This document shows positions 9,155-23,396 of a stretch of DNA of 64,000 nt, piece by piece. Numbering within the stretch: position 1 is the stretch's first letter; the number at the start of each line of letters is the position of its first letter. The notes beneath the pieces are model-generated. The model did no database searches and was not told where the DNA came from. It was given only the letters and a program-made list of their open reading frames with translations. Position numbers and translations under genes: made by a program. Where the stretch lies: the sequence record NC_041972.1; one strand, written 5' to 3'.

Positions 9155-9991
9155 ATGCACTTACTTGATAGTCCTGACGTTTGGATGCCCATACCTGGAT
9201 TCTCACGTTACGAGATCAATGAGGTAGGTGTAGTCAGGAATTGGAATAAACAAATCATTAGCCAATCTAAATGGGGTGATTACTTAAAGGTTGTTATTGC
9301 GGCCGATGACGGCGAACAGCGGATGATCATGGTCCATGTTGCGCTATGCCTCGCCTTCCATGGCAAGCGTCCCGATCTAGGTCCTAATGTTCTAGTAGTA
9401 ACAGTAAACCATAAAGACGGTAATAAAGAAAACAATACCAAATCTAATGTCGAGTGGGTGTCTAACTCAGACAACGTGTTACATGCCTATAAGACTCGTC
9501 TTAACAAGACATCTCAGCATGTGTTGATCGATGATGAGTTAACCGGCGAGCGATTCTCGGTACATTCTTACGAAGAGCTTATGCGCTGGGTCGGTAGTCC
9601 TCATTTGAAAGGCCGAATCTTTTGTAGCATATACCGAGACAAACTTTATCAAGATAGATATCGAATCACCGAATTACCTGGTTATGAACCAGGGTCAGGT
9701 GCGGCGGCAGCTATTCAGATTAAAGTGTTCGATATTGCGGCAAAGCATAATTTACGGAAGAGCGCATATGACGGCTATGTATTTGGCAGCGTCGATGAAG
9801 CTTCCGGAATGTTAAGTTTGAGTGTGTCGCGTATAAAAACGATATTAAGGCTGGGTAACCTGATTTTATTCAACGGTTACCTTTTCATGAAAGCTAACGA
9901 TATGCGAACTATACCTGGTTTCACTAAAGAACAAGTGGAAAAGTCACTTCGCATATTTAAAGCAAAACAACGACGTAAGAACATTTACTAA
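9155..9991 (+). mobile_element. Free-standing HNH homing endonuclease (NUMOD4 + HNH + NUMOD1-like)
   Basis: W.PIPGF..YEI...G.VRN (NUMOD4); VH...C.AF...VNHKDGNKENN...N.EW...DN..HA (HNH); FGSVDEAS..L..SVSRI DNA-binding repeat; abuts nrdB. Confidence 0.88.
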
Positions 9992-10004
9992 AGGTAAACA
10001 CAGC

Positions 10005-11141
10005 ATGCAGTACAGTACTTTCAACCAGAATAAAGTTGACTATCTCCAAGAACCAATGTTCTTTGGTGAAGCCGTGTCTGTTTCTCGCTACGACCAACAG
10101 CGTTATGAAATCTTTGAAAAATTGATCGAGAAACAACACAGTTTCTTCTGGCGTGAGATTGAGGTCGATGTGTCTAAGGATCGTATTGATTTCAATACAA
10201 AGCTCACCGACAGTGAAAAACACATCTTCATCAGCAATTTGAAATACCAAACCCTGCTGGACTCGATTCAGGGTCGCAGTCCTAACGTGGCATTCCTGCC
10301 GATCTGTTCTATCCCGGAACTCGAAACCTGGATGGAAACCTGGTCGTTCTCTGAAACGATCCACTCGCGCTCATACACCCACATCATCCGTAATGTGTTC
10401 AATGAACCAGGGGTGGTGTTTGATGATATCGTCACTAACGAACACATCAAAGCCCGCGCAGCATCAGCAACCAAATACTACGATGAGTTGATTGAACTCA
10501 CGTCTTACTGGAATCTGTTGGGTGAAGGCACTCACGTGGTCAACGGTAAGAAAGTCGTGGTTAGTCTTCGTGCACTGAAACGCCTGCTATTTCTCTGTAT
10601 GGTGTCTGTTAACGCATTAGAAGCTGTTCGTTTCTATGTGTCGTTCGCCTGTTCATTTGCCTTTGCTGAACGTGAGTTGATGGAAGGCAATGCCAAGATC
10701 ATTAAACTGATCGCCCGCGATGAAGCCCTGCACCTGACCGGCACTCAGTACATGATCAATCTCTTGAAGTCTGGCGAAGATGATGCTGAGATGGCGGAGA
10801 TCGTTAAAGAGTGCTGGAAGGAAGCCTGGGACATTTTTGTCGAAGTTGCCGAACAAGAGAAAGATTGGGCAGCTTACTTGTTCCAGGACGGCGGAATGAT
10901 TGGTCTGACGGAGAAGGTGATCGTTCAATATATTGAATATATCACTAACGTCCGCATGCGGGCTATCGGAATGGATATTCCATTCCCTAACGCCACCAGT
11001 AATCCAATCCCATGGATCAACTCCTGGCTGGTCTCTGACAACGTACAGGTGGCTCCACAGGAAACAGAAATTACATCCTATCTGGTCGGTCAGATCGACT
11101 CGAAAGTGGACGCCAACGATTTCGACGATTTCCAACTGTAA
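10005..11141 (+). CDS. nrdB: Class Ia ribonucleotide reductase beta subunit
   Basis: 378 aa; E. coli-like throughout: [14 protein letters not shown] (radical Tyr), [18 protein letters not shown]-terminal SYLVGQIDS...DFQL. Confidence 0.97.
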
Positions 11142-11820: not shown

Positions 11821-12438
11821 ATGAAAAGAACAAAAAATATAAAGCTTGATCGTTTTCGTAAGGCATGGAAATTTAAGAAGGTTACGCTGGCATTGATGGT
11901 GGTAACCGGATCGTTTTACCTGGTGGCGTGCGATGAGCCGCGTGATCAGCAAGTGCAGATGTATCAGAATGCGGATGACTGTAGTCGAGCTCGCCCGCAA
12001 GACAAGCAGCGCTGTTCTGATGCGTACAATAACGCCCTGCGTGAATCTGAGCGTACTGCCCCGCGTTACGGATCGAAAGGAGATTGTGATGCCGAGTTTG
12101 GCTCTGACAATTGCTACCAATCCACGGCTCATAGCTCGACCTGGATGCCGTATATGGGCGGATACATGTACGGGCGCAACGGGAGTTACGCACAGCCGTT
12201 GTATTCCTCACGGGTAACGTCAAGTCCTGCCTATCACCGCTACGTCGATGCTGGCGGACGTAACTACGGCAGTGCTATCTCTGGACGCTCGATTAATACC
12301 ACACGCAGCGCGTTAGCGCCCAAGCCTGTAGTCACTTCAACCATTACCCGTGGCGGGTTCGGTGCAAGCGTGGCACACATGAGTAGTTCTCATTCTTCGT
12401 CCAGTCACAGCAGTGGCGGACATTCATCTGGCGGTTAA
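11821..12438 (+). CDS. ygiB: YgiB/UPF0441 (DUF1190) family lipoprotein
   Basis: MKRTK.I, lipobox LVAC, YQNADDC, AYNNAL.E.ERTAP.Y, DC.AEFG, WMP.M.GYM.G, QPL.SS, APKP...T.TRGGFG match enterobacterial YgiB as recalled. Confidence 0.9.
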   Translation: MKRTKNIKLDRFRKAWKFKKVTLALMVVTGSFYLVACDEPRDQQVQMYQNADDCSRARPQDKQRCSDAYNNALRESERTAPRYGSKGDCDAEFGSDNCYQSTAHSSTWMPYMGGYMYGRNGSYAQPLYSSRVTSSPAYHRYVDAGGRNYGSAISGRSINTTRSALAPKPVVTSTITRGGFGASVAHMSSSHSSSSHSSGGHSSGG

Positions 12439-19512: not shown

Positions 19513-19684
19513 TAATTAAATACTAGACAGTGTAATCATATGCGATAAGGGGGTCTGGTGAAAACCATATCCCTTTACGGATTATGCTGTCTTTTTTTTT
19601 GGTTAAGAAATACTAGCCTTCTCCATTATATGCAATTTACACGATACACTTTTCTATTTATTACATCAGCAAGAGAGATAAGAC

Positions 19685-19828
19685 ATGAGCGCACCTGAAG
19701 AATTTGATATGGACGACCTGGAATCACTGGACCTGGAAGGCGCTGAGAAAGCGGCAGAAGAGAAAGCAGCCGGCGGTGGTGAAGCCCTGTCTGATGGCGA
19801 AGCGGATTGCGAAGGTTGCAAGATCTAA
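19685..19828 (+). CDS. 47-aa acidic peptide ending in CxxC-K-I, resembling the NrdA C-terminal redox tail
   Basis: MSAPEEFDMDDLESLDLEGAEKAAEEKAAGGGEALSDGEADCEGCKI*; purine-rich AAGAGAG upstream; in-frame TAA at 19679-19681; codons like other phage genes (GAA, CTG, GGT); missed by ORF track (<60 aa). Confidence 0.75.
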   Translation: MSAPEEFDMDDLESLDLEGAEKAAEEKAAGGGEALSDGEADCEGCKI

Positions 19829-19881
19829 ATGCTGTGATGTGAATCGGGTCTGATATGGGATCAGTTAACCGAGGAAACATC

Positions 19882-20181
19882 ATGAACATCTATCTTGTCC
19901 AACGCAAATCAGAGCCCCGTTACACACCGGATTCATTTATCGCTGTTGCAACATCGACCGAAGAGGTGCTGATGATTCACCCTAGCTACTTTCAGGGAAA
20001 GAACACACCTGTGAAGTTTGACGAGGCAATGGCCGCCCTCTGGGCGAATGAGTTATCCGATCAGCCAATGGATCATCAATGGGTTACCGATAAGAACGAG
20101 CTCGAGGTCACCTATCTGGGTCAGGCTGCGATGGAGTTGACCGGCCCCACGATCATTGAGATGTGGTACGGGTACGCCTGA
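19882..20181 (+). CDS. Hypothetical protein
   Basis: 99 aa, GAGGA RBS. Confidence 0.7.
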   Translation: MNIYLVQRKSEPRYTPDSFIAVATSTEEVLMIHPSYFQGKNTPVKFDEAMAALWANELSDQPMDHQWVTDKNELEVTYLGQAAMELTGPTIIEMWYGYA

Positions 20182-21914: not shown

Positions 21915-21998
21915 TCGCTACGAGGGGAGGTGTGATCACTCCCCTTTTATGCCGGGCGAGGAATCGTATAGGTGCTTTTGCCAACGAGGAATCTTATC

Positions 21999-22781
21999 GT
22001 GTTTGAAATGCTTTTAGGCGGTAGTCCGAACGGGAACTTGCCATTTGGGCAGTTGTTAGCCAAAACAACAACAGACTTTACAGTCCCTGCCGGAGTGACC
22101 GATATTTCCGGTGTTGCTATCGGTGGCGGCGGCGGGAACTCACGCGGCAATACCATTGGTGGGTCAGGGGGTGATTTGCGCTGGCGGAATCACATTGCCG
22201 TTATTCCAGGTGAAGTGCTGTCACTTATTACCGGTGTGGTAACAGCGGCTGGTAAACCGGGCACCTCCAGTAAGATCATCCGTAAGTCAACCGGCGAAGT
22301 ATTACTGATCGCTAAAGGCGGTGACTCCACCGATGTATCAACGCCGATCAATGGAGCTGATATAGGTGGAGGGAACGGCGGTGTTGGCACCAATCCATCA
22401 GGTGGTGGAGCTGGCGGGTATACCGGCAATGGCGGTAAAGGTGGTTCAGCTGCCGATGTTGACTCTGGCGGTGGTGGCGGTGGTAGCTCTTATACCTTCA
22501 GCGGAAACAGTTTTGGTTGTGGCGGTGGGGGCATCTACCCTAACGGCAAAGGCGCTGATGGTGGTGCGCCGCCTGTCAATACCGGCAGTCAGGCATTTGG
22601 TGGCAGAGGGGGTTCTGGTGGTAATCCTGGTCAAAACACGAATGGGGGCTTATACGGCGGTGGTGCTGGCGCACCCATTAGGATAACCTATGCAACAACA
22701 GGGACTGCTGGCTGCATCCGACTCATTTGGGGTTCAGGTCGCGCCTTCCCAGCTACGAAGACTGCAGATATTACAGCTTAA
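21999..22781 (+). CDS. Glycine-rich-domain virion/tail accessory protein (paralog 1)
   Basis: GTG start gives MFEMLL; F.VPAGV, PGE.L, GGGAGGY.G.GG, RLIWG.GR.FP shared with 22791 and 34856. Confidence 0.7.
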   Translation: MFEMLLGGSPNGNLPFGQLLAKTTTDFTVPAGVTDISGVAIGGGGGNSRGNTIGGSGGDLRWRNHIAVIPGEVLSLITGVVTAAGKPGTSSKIIRKSTGEVLLIAKGGDSTDVSTPINGADIGGGNGGVGTNPSGGGAGGYTGNGGKGGSAADVDSGGGGGGSSYTFSGNSFGCGGGGIYPNGKGADGGAPPVNTGSQAFGGRGGSGGNPGQNTNGGLYGGGAGAPIRITYATTGTAGCIRLIWGSGRAFPATKTADITA

Positions 22782-22790
22782 GGACTGATC

Positions 22791-23396
22791 ATGTTTGAAA
22801 TGTTATTTTGCGGCAAGCCAGCATCAGTTGGCGGCCAACAACTCTTCACTACTGCCGGTACCTTTAGCTTTGTAGTCCCGGCGGGGATTACTGAGCTCGA
22901 CGCCTATACTCAAGGTGGTGGCGGTGGTGGCGGTAATGGTAACCCAGGTGTATACAAAGGAGCGTCAGGCGGCTCTGGCAAAGTAGGTGCTAACGGTTAT
23001 CTGAACAATATTTCAGTTACACCCGGTGAAACACTGACCGTTATTGTTGGTGCTGCAGGTGCGGCATTAAAAGCTGGGGAGGCGACCCAATTACTTCGTG
23101 GCAGTAACGTGTTACTTGCTGTAGCGGGTGGGGCCGCAGGTGTTACAGCAACTGGCACAAGCAGTTCTGAGAACAACCTAGGCACTAGCGGTACCGCGGC
23201 ACCAACGATTCCAGGTAATACCACAACCTACCCTGCTGCAAACAAACGCCCTGGAAGTGGTGGTAACGGTGGTGCGGGGCGTTACAACGGCGGGGGTGGC
23301 ATAGTGACCGGACCAGGTATCGCAGGTGGCTGCCGCCTGATGTGGGGTAAAGATCGCGATTACCCATCAACAGGCGTAGCTGACGTCAAGATGTAA
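22791..23396 (+). CDS. Glycine-rich-domain virion/tail accessory protein (paralog 2)
   Basis: MFEMLF start; FVVPAGI, VTPGETL, RLMWGKDRDYPS. Confidence 0.7.
   Translation: MFEMLFCGKPASVGGQQLFTTAGTFSFVVPAGITELDAYTQGGGGGGGNGNPGVYKGASGGSGKVGANGYLNNISVTPGETLTVIVGAAGAALKAGEATQLLRGSNVLLAVAGGAAGVTATGTSSSENNLGTSGTAAPTIPGNTTTYPAANKRPGSGGNGGAGRYNGGGGIVTGPGIAGGCRLMWGKDRDYPSTGVADVKM

Follow-up and report, generated by a model that had tools for sequence, protein, structure and literature searches.

A phage copy of an unnamed enterobacterial small-protein family whose C-terminal end resembles the redox tail of class Ia ribonucleotide reductase

To our knowledge, all descriptions so far of the re-reduction tail of ribonucleotide reductase (RNR) treat it as part of the alpha subunit, and our literature search found no paper on a free RNR tail or on phages that carry nrdB only. 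In the alpha subunit, the cysteine pair of the tail reduces the active site and is in turn reduced by thioredoxin, and the binding of the tail and the binding of substrate in the pocket are mutually exclusive (PMC11903788). A large subunit made of separate polypeptides is known from Aeromonas phage Aeh1, in which the products of the split NrdA, NrdA-a and NrdA-b, reassemble (PMC3045599). Small proteins are also known to act on the enzyme: Sml1 interferes with tail-mediated regeneration, to go by the title of a 2007 PNAS paper given in PMC4078304, and Hug1 binds the RNR small subunit (PMC4245953). The gene described here, from an Erwinia phage, encodes a free-standing small protein with an end that resembles the alpha tail.

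The window, that is the whole stretch of 64,000 nucleotides that was analysed, belongs to Erwinia phage vB_EamM_Deimos-Minion (Agricanvirus), to whose record megablast matches it at 100% identity, and adding 62000 to a window coordinate gives the corresponding coordinate in KU886225.1. The first-pass annotation had pointed to a separate ORF of 47 aa that its own list of open reading frames did not contain. This ORF is confirmed and was absent from that list only; GenBank KU886225.1 already annotates 19685-19828 as DM_112/gp112, hypothetical protein. The purine-rich ribosome-binding site and the upstream in-frame stop codon that had been described with it can both be read directly from the sequence, as can the end of the translation, ...DGEADCEGCKI followed by TAA. 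The gene, its parts and the elements on its 5' side are as follows.

19546..19600, plus strand: in the interval that separates gp111 from gp112, stable hairpin (19546-19577), then about 14 nt and nine consecutive U (19592-19600)
19671-19678, plus strand: purine-rich ribosome-binding stretch AAGAGAGA, just 5' of gp112, from the sequence
19679-19681, plus strand: in-frame TAA that closes the gp112 frame upstream, from the sequence
19685..19828, plus strand: small-protein gene DM_112/gp112, 47 codons and TAA; member of phrog_10239 and of an enterobacterial 43-aa family
19685..19771, plus strand: N-terminal half of gp112 (residues 1-29), an acidic/aromatic start and a predicted helix (residues 10-29); family-specific
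19772..19825, plus strand: flexible acidic C-terminal tail of gp112 (residues 30-47) with an NrdA-tail-like end, as judged by low pLDDT and a motif match
19808-19810 and 19817-19819: Cys42 and Cys45 of the gp112 tail, followed by Lys46 and Ile47

The hairpin at 19546-19577 has a predicted RNA folding energy of -21.1 kcal/mol (z=-3.2). A scan for consensus terminators found none between gp111 and gp112; the hairpin with its U-run is no terminator of the canonical type and probably either stops transcription or has a regulatory function. On both sides it is flanked by copies of a 26-nt motif (AAATACTAG, 11 nt, and then A/T-TATGC), located at 19518-19543 and 19608-19633, 90 nt apart. This motif is absent elsewhere in the window, for which 0.14 occurrences are expected by chance, and the pair may represent a promoter or regulatory element of the gp112 transcription unit. 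Directly 3' of gp112 lies another hairpin (19834-19883; -18.5 kcal/mol, z=-3.5), which pairs across a purine-rich stretch and across the ATG at 19882. This ATG is one of two possible starts of gp113, and the hairpin could exert translational control of that gene. Further downstream, the adjacent, glycine-rich and unannotated gp116 (21972-22781) and gp117 (22791-23396) look, from their sequences, like tandem paralogues with similar C-terminal ends.

With regard to the protein itself, phrog_10239 (function unknown) matches gp112 over its full length (residues 1-47, E=1.5e-29). Pfam and NCBIfam contain no family for either the phage or the bacterial peptide at E<=1, phmmer with gp112 against PDB sequences returned nothing and a profile search of the same sequences gave one chance match (E=0.88); no library that was searched has a supported name for the family. 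The terminal hexapeptide was also looked for in the literature, and no paper was found. In the AlphaFold2 model of gp112, helices occupy residues 10-14 and 17-29 with pLDDT values of 71-81, and residues 30-47 have no secondary structure and pLDDT values of 54-61, so that the tail is predicted to be disordered. The best explanation of the modelled protein is an acidic helix followed by a disordered acidic tail that ends in the redox motif of the class Ia alpha subunit. The possibility that gp112 is a redoxin with a thioredoxin fold was rejected, given that no Pfam or NCBIfam family matches it and that the cysteine pair sits in the disordered end.

As judged by sequence comparison, gp112 is the phage copy of a widespread, unnamed enterobacterial small-protein family. 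By tblastn, all Agricanvirus records contain the peptide, with 96-100% identity, and AH06 also has it, with 74.5%. A scan of one genome per bacterial species gave 25 chromosomal free-standing ORFs of about 43 aa, belonging to the genera Erwinia, Pantoea, Izhakiella, Mixta, Hafnia, Rouxiella and Enterobacillus, and these align end to end with gp112 at 51-61% identity. A profile search of 5.8 billion proteins returned 200 family members, nearly all of them named 'hypothetical', which include proteins from Serratia, Sodalis, Leminorella, Budvicia, Pragia and others. The host E. amylovora carries a member as well (P0089), on 323 contigs. The peptide is not an invention of the phage; it belongs to this chromosomal family in Enterobacterales, the host included, whose NrdA keeps a tail of its own.

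The members are also highly constrained. In an alignment of 51 sequences, in which gp112 shares 44-98% identity with the other 50, F7, D8, E39, D41, E43 and G44 are conserved at a level of at least 90%, which includes the N-terminal Phe-Asp, and C42, C45, K46 and I47 are invariant (51 of 51). Of the ORF and its terminal cysteines, on whose conservation in relatives the first-pass annotation had hinged, the ORF is conserved in all Agricanvirus records and in metagenomic relatives, and the cysteines are present in every aligned sequence. For the bacterial homologues the median dN/dS is about 0.06 at a dS of about 1.3, a ratio by which the bacterial family is under strong purifying selection. That gp112 is a chance ORF or the decayed 3' remnant of a lost nrdA is refuted by this conservation, and we regard it as extremely improbable. 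The ORF is indeed short and of low complexity, and an HNH endonuclease gene adjoins nrdB in this phage, but it aligns end to end with bacterial genes that stand alone, are closed by terminators of their own and show this low dN/dS, its conservation extends through all Agricanvirus records and the metagenomic relatives, and its N-terminal half is conserved yet unrelated to NrdA.

In bacteria, the Erwiniaceae copies follow yedI, and those of Hafnia and Enterobacillus sit between nhaB and fadR/cstA; terminator-like hairpins with U-runs follow the bacterial copies. At the loci examined, the copies are not located beside nrd genes, and the upstream regions of bacterial and phage copies have no motif in common with the nrdA promoter beyond chance 9-mers. 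E. coli is without the gene at both syntenic sites: yodC was rejected as an unrelated gene, and no more than about 220 bp, with no annotated gene, separate nhaB from fadR. Four of the chromosomal proteins of 43-44 aa (P0012, P0020, P0077 and P0119) are named 'Conjugal transfer protein TraD' in UniRef. We rejected this identity, as no Pfam or NCBIfam family matches at E<=1 and the loci are chromosomal; a tblastn search of 72,556 plasmids with two family members gave no match. An identity as RiPP precursor was also rejected, on the grounds that the bacterial neighbours are genes of the yedI/yedA/yedP type or nhaB, fadR and cstA, and that the phage neighbours of gp112 are unrelated hypothetical genes. 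The copy of Pantoea stewartii (L022:3998-4129) is found in a different, unannotated context, and its sequence type matches a viral contig of 36 kb from IMG/VR (L045:~10001-10129), which suggests that this gene sits in a prophage-like region.

Besides Agricanvirus, at least four other phage lineages have copies of the family. In the unrelated jumbo phage pEa_SNUABM_5 the module forms the C-terminal 40-odd residues of a very acidic protein of 208 aa, Pantoea phage AAM37 (50 kb) carries the peptide, and further viral copies are found on IMG/VR contigs of 36, 240 and 279 kb. An exhaustive HMM search of 1.84 billion representatives gave 31 proteins at E<=0.001, all of which are either small or phage-like proteins of 169-223 aa with the module at the C-terminus. 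There is no NrdA among these 31, and no other protein family with a gp112-like ending was found in that search. In the phage-like proteins, three to four different N-terminal domains, all unknown, precede the module, and their only matches are to unknown PHROGs. One apparent member of 715 aa (P0036, from a single 90% cluster) was rejected as a mis-clustered tape-measure-like protein.

To describe the likeness of gp112 to class Ia NrdA tails, the spacing of the cysteines has to be taken into account. The NrdA of enterobacteria, Erwinia and Pantoea included, has the ending ...DDGCESGACKI, in which four residues separate the cysteines. To the E. coli protein the likeness of gp112 is weak and not significant (BLASTP E=0.93; -0.7 bits with the family HMM). 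When the family was compared with E. coli-type tails alone, hhalign gave P=0.024 and a probability of 2%. We also assembled a set of 81 NrdA sequences, namely 79 of class Ia from viral contigs together with those of Erwinia phage pEa_SNUABM_47 and Vibrio phage Va2. The cysteines are separated by two residues in 74 of the 81 and by four in the remaining 7, Lys-Ile is the end of 44, and of the 6 residues that precede the first cysteine, a median of 4 are acidic. The layout of gp112 is that of these tails, with an acidic disordered end and a cysteine pair placed two residues from the carboxy terminus. The resemblance extends to the letters themselves: NrdA of pEa_SNUABM_47 ends ...DDDCDSCKI and family member P0274 ends ...EEDCDSCKI. 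Both spacings, two and four, are found in NrdA and in the peptide family, in which the metagenomic member P0008 has four residues between the cysteines.

Against the 81 full-length class Ia NrdA sequences, the family HMM aligns only at the extreme C-terminus. The best score was 20.6 bits (E=1.8e-6 for 81 targets), obtained for L092 with nearly the whole peptide aligned to the tail, and dozens more NrdA scored 10-15 bits. Among 10,760 six-frame ORFs from the examined loci, a decoy pool of modest size, the 85 top-scoring sequences are all family or NrdA, and the best of the others reached 5.8 bits. In the reciprocal direction, an HMM of the last 14 residues of NrdA tails ranked 34 family ORFs above every other ORF. 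hhalign of the family with 67 diverse tails gave a probability of 91% and P=9.6e-7 over the last 14 columns, but it should be underlined that the tail-match statistics do not come from independent events, since the NrdA sample consists of related viral sequences. The NrdA signal arose only with diverse tails and not with E. coli NrdA alone; it is confined to the last 14-23 residues, an acidic region of low complexity, and an HMM of the N-terminal half found family members only and no NrdA.

At the level of sequence, the tail likeness is therefore specific and significant for NrdA with two-residue cysteine spacing, and the gp112 tail lies inside the range over which class Ia NrdA redox tails naturally vary. 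Of the resemblance first proposed, the part that stands is that to two-residue-spaced tails, carried by the hhalign P value and the reciprocal HMMs, whereas that to the E. coli tail, which had been named as the model, does not; likewise, the likeness claimed for the ORF as a whole is borne out for its last residues but not for its N-terminal half. As gp112 is free-standing and the genome is without nrdA, we class it as tail-like only and not as NrdA.

The same data bear on whether gp112 could be a small thiol or metal protein of a general kind, without any dedicated link to RNR, that is a thioredoxin/glutaredoxin (Trx/Grx) substrate, a decoy, a redox sensor or a metal-binding peptide, whose tail has come to look like that of NrdA by convergence. 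Two cysteines two residues apart are a generic redox and metal motif, and such a role would suit an N-terminal half unrelated to NrdA, bacterial copies without genomic linkage to nrd genes, the presence of the peptide in AAM37, a phage without RNR genes, and the fusion of the module to several different N-terminal domains. However, the match also covers the acidic run, the Asp before the first cysteine and the Lys-Ile of the carboxy terminus, which is identical, it holds in the reciprocal direction and is specific among the 10,760 ORFs, and the 1.84 billion representatives yielded no other family with such an ending. On balance we consider this reading unlikely, though one that deserves serious weight.

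The RNR genes of the phage are represented by the following feature.

10005..11141, plus strand: nrdB (DM_94, gp94), class Ia beta subunit (Pfam PF00268, E=1.9e-48); the only RNR gene of the genome

Over its whole length, the product of this gene shares 74% identity with E. coli NrdB (279 of 378 residues, BLASTP), and in this comparison it retains the alpha-binding C-terminal tail. Mass spectrometry of Deimos-Minion lysate detected gp94, and gp112 goes unmentioned in the published lysate proteomics (PMC6690015). The first-pass annotation had seen nrdB but no nrdA in the window, an observation that is upheld and can be extended to the complete genome of 273.5 kb: no nrdA is annotated among its 324 features, tblastn with E. 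coli NrdA gave no match better than E=1.4, and a Pfam scan of seven large hypothetical proteins (five of at least 660 aa and two of about 520 aa) revealed no nrdA. Among the scanned proteins were a chimallin, an internal head protein and a divergent family B DNA polymerase; the others had no Pfam family. With this result, the suggestion that the phage encodes a tail-less NrdA elsewhere, to which the peptide would add the tail, fails, because the Deimos-Minion genome has no nrdA, and we give it practically no credence. The genome does encode thymidylate synthase, DHFR and thymidine kinase, and no ORF of at least 60 aa in it contains an active-site motif of the Trx/Grx type.

A number of other features of these genomes were observed. 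DM_227, which lies outside the window (KU886225.1 183278-185413) and carries the annotation hypothetical, has a match to the Phikzvirus chimallin family (E=2.1e-46), and Deimos-Minion is therefore a nucleus-forming jumbo phage; the divergent family B DNA polymerase is DM_225. An HNH endonuclease gene, gp93, precedes nrdB gp94 (window 9155-11141), and the order of nrdB and the HNH gene is reversed in some Agricanvirus members (PMC6690015). The nrdB alleles differ by about 22% within Agricanvirus. Erwinia phage AH04 (Meadowvirus; L131:4001-7376) likewise has a host-like nrdB without an adjacent nrdA, and jumbo phages with host-like NrdB are absent from the best NrdA matches. Near nrdB the window encodes a DUF1190 protein (11821-12438; PF06693, E=3.8e-42), and a DUF1190 protein is also encoded by pEa_SNUABM_5 (L130:35465-36004), another carrier of the tail module.

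Taken together, the tail motif and the genomic setting make it plausible, although somewhat less than probable, that gp112 acts in trans as a free 'alpha tail' that engages the host NrdA and/or the host Trx/Grx. Because its end is the same as that of the alpha tail, the free peptide should meet the same partners. The gp112 tail would then dock where NrdA's own tail docks, in the active-site pocket, and its cysteine pair would cycle between dithiol and disulfide, with the host thioredoxin/glutaredoxin system as the reductant. That gp112 touches NrdA or Trx/Grx at all, that its cysteines cycle, and in which direction it would act are inferences on our part. For such a peptide, action on the host NrdA paired with the phage NrdB would be our preferred reading. 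In its widest and rather doubtful form, the proposal is that Enterobacterales possess a class of trans-acting RNR alpha-tail peptides that phages have captured repeatedly, and that in Deimos-Minion NrdB and a free tail would take over and speed up the host NrdA in place of a full phage RNR.

Several observations count against this. The poor match to the four-residue tails of the E. coli and Erwinia type speaks against the free-alpha-tail reading as such. A dedicated role in RNR function is made less likely by the intact NrdA tail that the family-carrying hosts have of their own, by the lack of both nrd linkage and a common promoter motif in bacteria, and by the peptide in AAM37, a phage for which no RNR gene is annotated and in which tblastn with E. 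coli NrdA and NrdB found no match. AAM37 also shows that co-occurrence of the peptide with nrdB-only genomes, which the first-pass annotation had proposed to test, is not a rule.

The opposite direction of effect was also considered, in which the peptide would be a tail mimic that fills the pocket or the reductant sites of the NrdA tail and slows re-reduction, as a functional analogue of Sml1. The tail-motif evidence is the same for such a brake as for a free alpha tail; the mutual exclusion of tail and substrate in the pocket (PMC11903788) provides a means, and, with a tail already present in cis in the hosts, a further copy is easier to understand as a regulator than as a spare part. A brake nevertheless seems counter-productive for a phage that invests in dNTP supply with NrdB, thymidylate synthase, DHFR and thymidine kinase. 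Moreover, the strict invariance of both cysteines is what redox cycling needs and more than blocking needs, and no sequence search revealed any likeness to proteins of the Sml1 type. We therefore hold a brake to be distinctly unlikely; a boost is slightly favoured over it because both cysteines are invariant, as they are in functional tails.

If the link of the free alpha tail to RNR is true, a conserved free-standing protein with the alpha-tail motif would constitute a new layer of control or support of bacterial RNR, and it would help to explain how beta-only phages exploit the alpha subunit of their hosts. Without this link, the proteins would still form a well-constrained, uncharacterised small-protein family with a hypothesis that can be checked. 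Many Enterobacterales have the family in their chromosomes, and several phage lineages have it too; among the carriers are an important plant pathogen and the phages that are candidates for its biocontrol.

Compared with known systems, gp112 is like NrdH, thioredoxin and glutaredoxin, which feed electrons to RNR, in being a small protein with a cysteine pair. These redoxins have a thioredoxin fold of about 75-110 aa with the pair at the start of a helix, whereas gp112, with 47 aa, has no Pfam match, a single predicted helix and its cysteine pair at the terminus. Sml1, Hug1 and their relatives are, like gp112, small, disordered and free-standing, and they act on RNR; unlike gp112, they are inhibitors, exclusively eukaryotic, and without the cysteine pair motif of the tail, and no sequence relationship between gp112 and this group was found. 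A precedent for part of the RNR large subunit as a separate polypeptide is provided by NrdA-a and NrdA-b of Aeh1. There, however, it is the catalytic body that a homing endonuclease has divided into two halves, both of them present, whereas Deimos-Minion is without nrdA and gp112 corresponds to the tail motif only. With regard to the class Ia NrdA tail, gp112 differs in not being attached to an RNR catalytic body (the Pfam PF02867 barrel) and in having an N-terminal acidic/aromatic motif and a helix of its own, and it resembles the two-residue-spaced tails and not the four-residue tail of the NrdA of its hosts. What it has in common with the NrdA tail is the predicted disordered acidic C-terminal end, the cysteine pair and Lys-Ile, followed directly by the stop codon.
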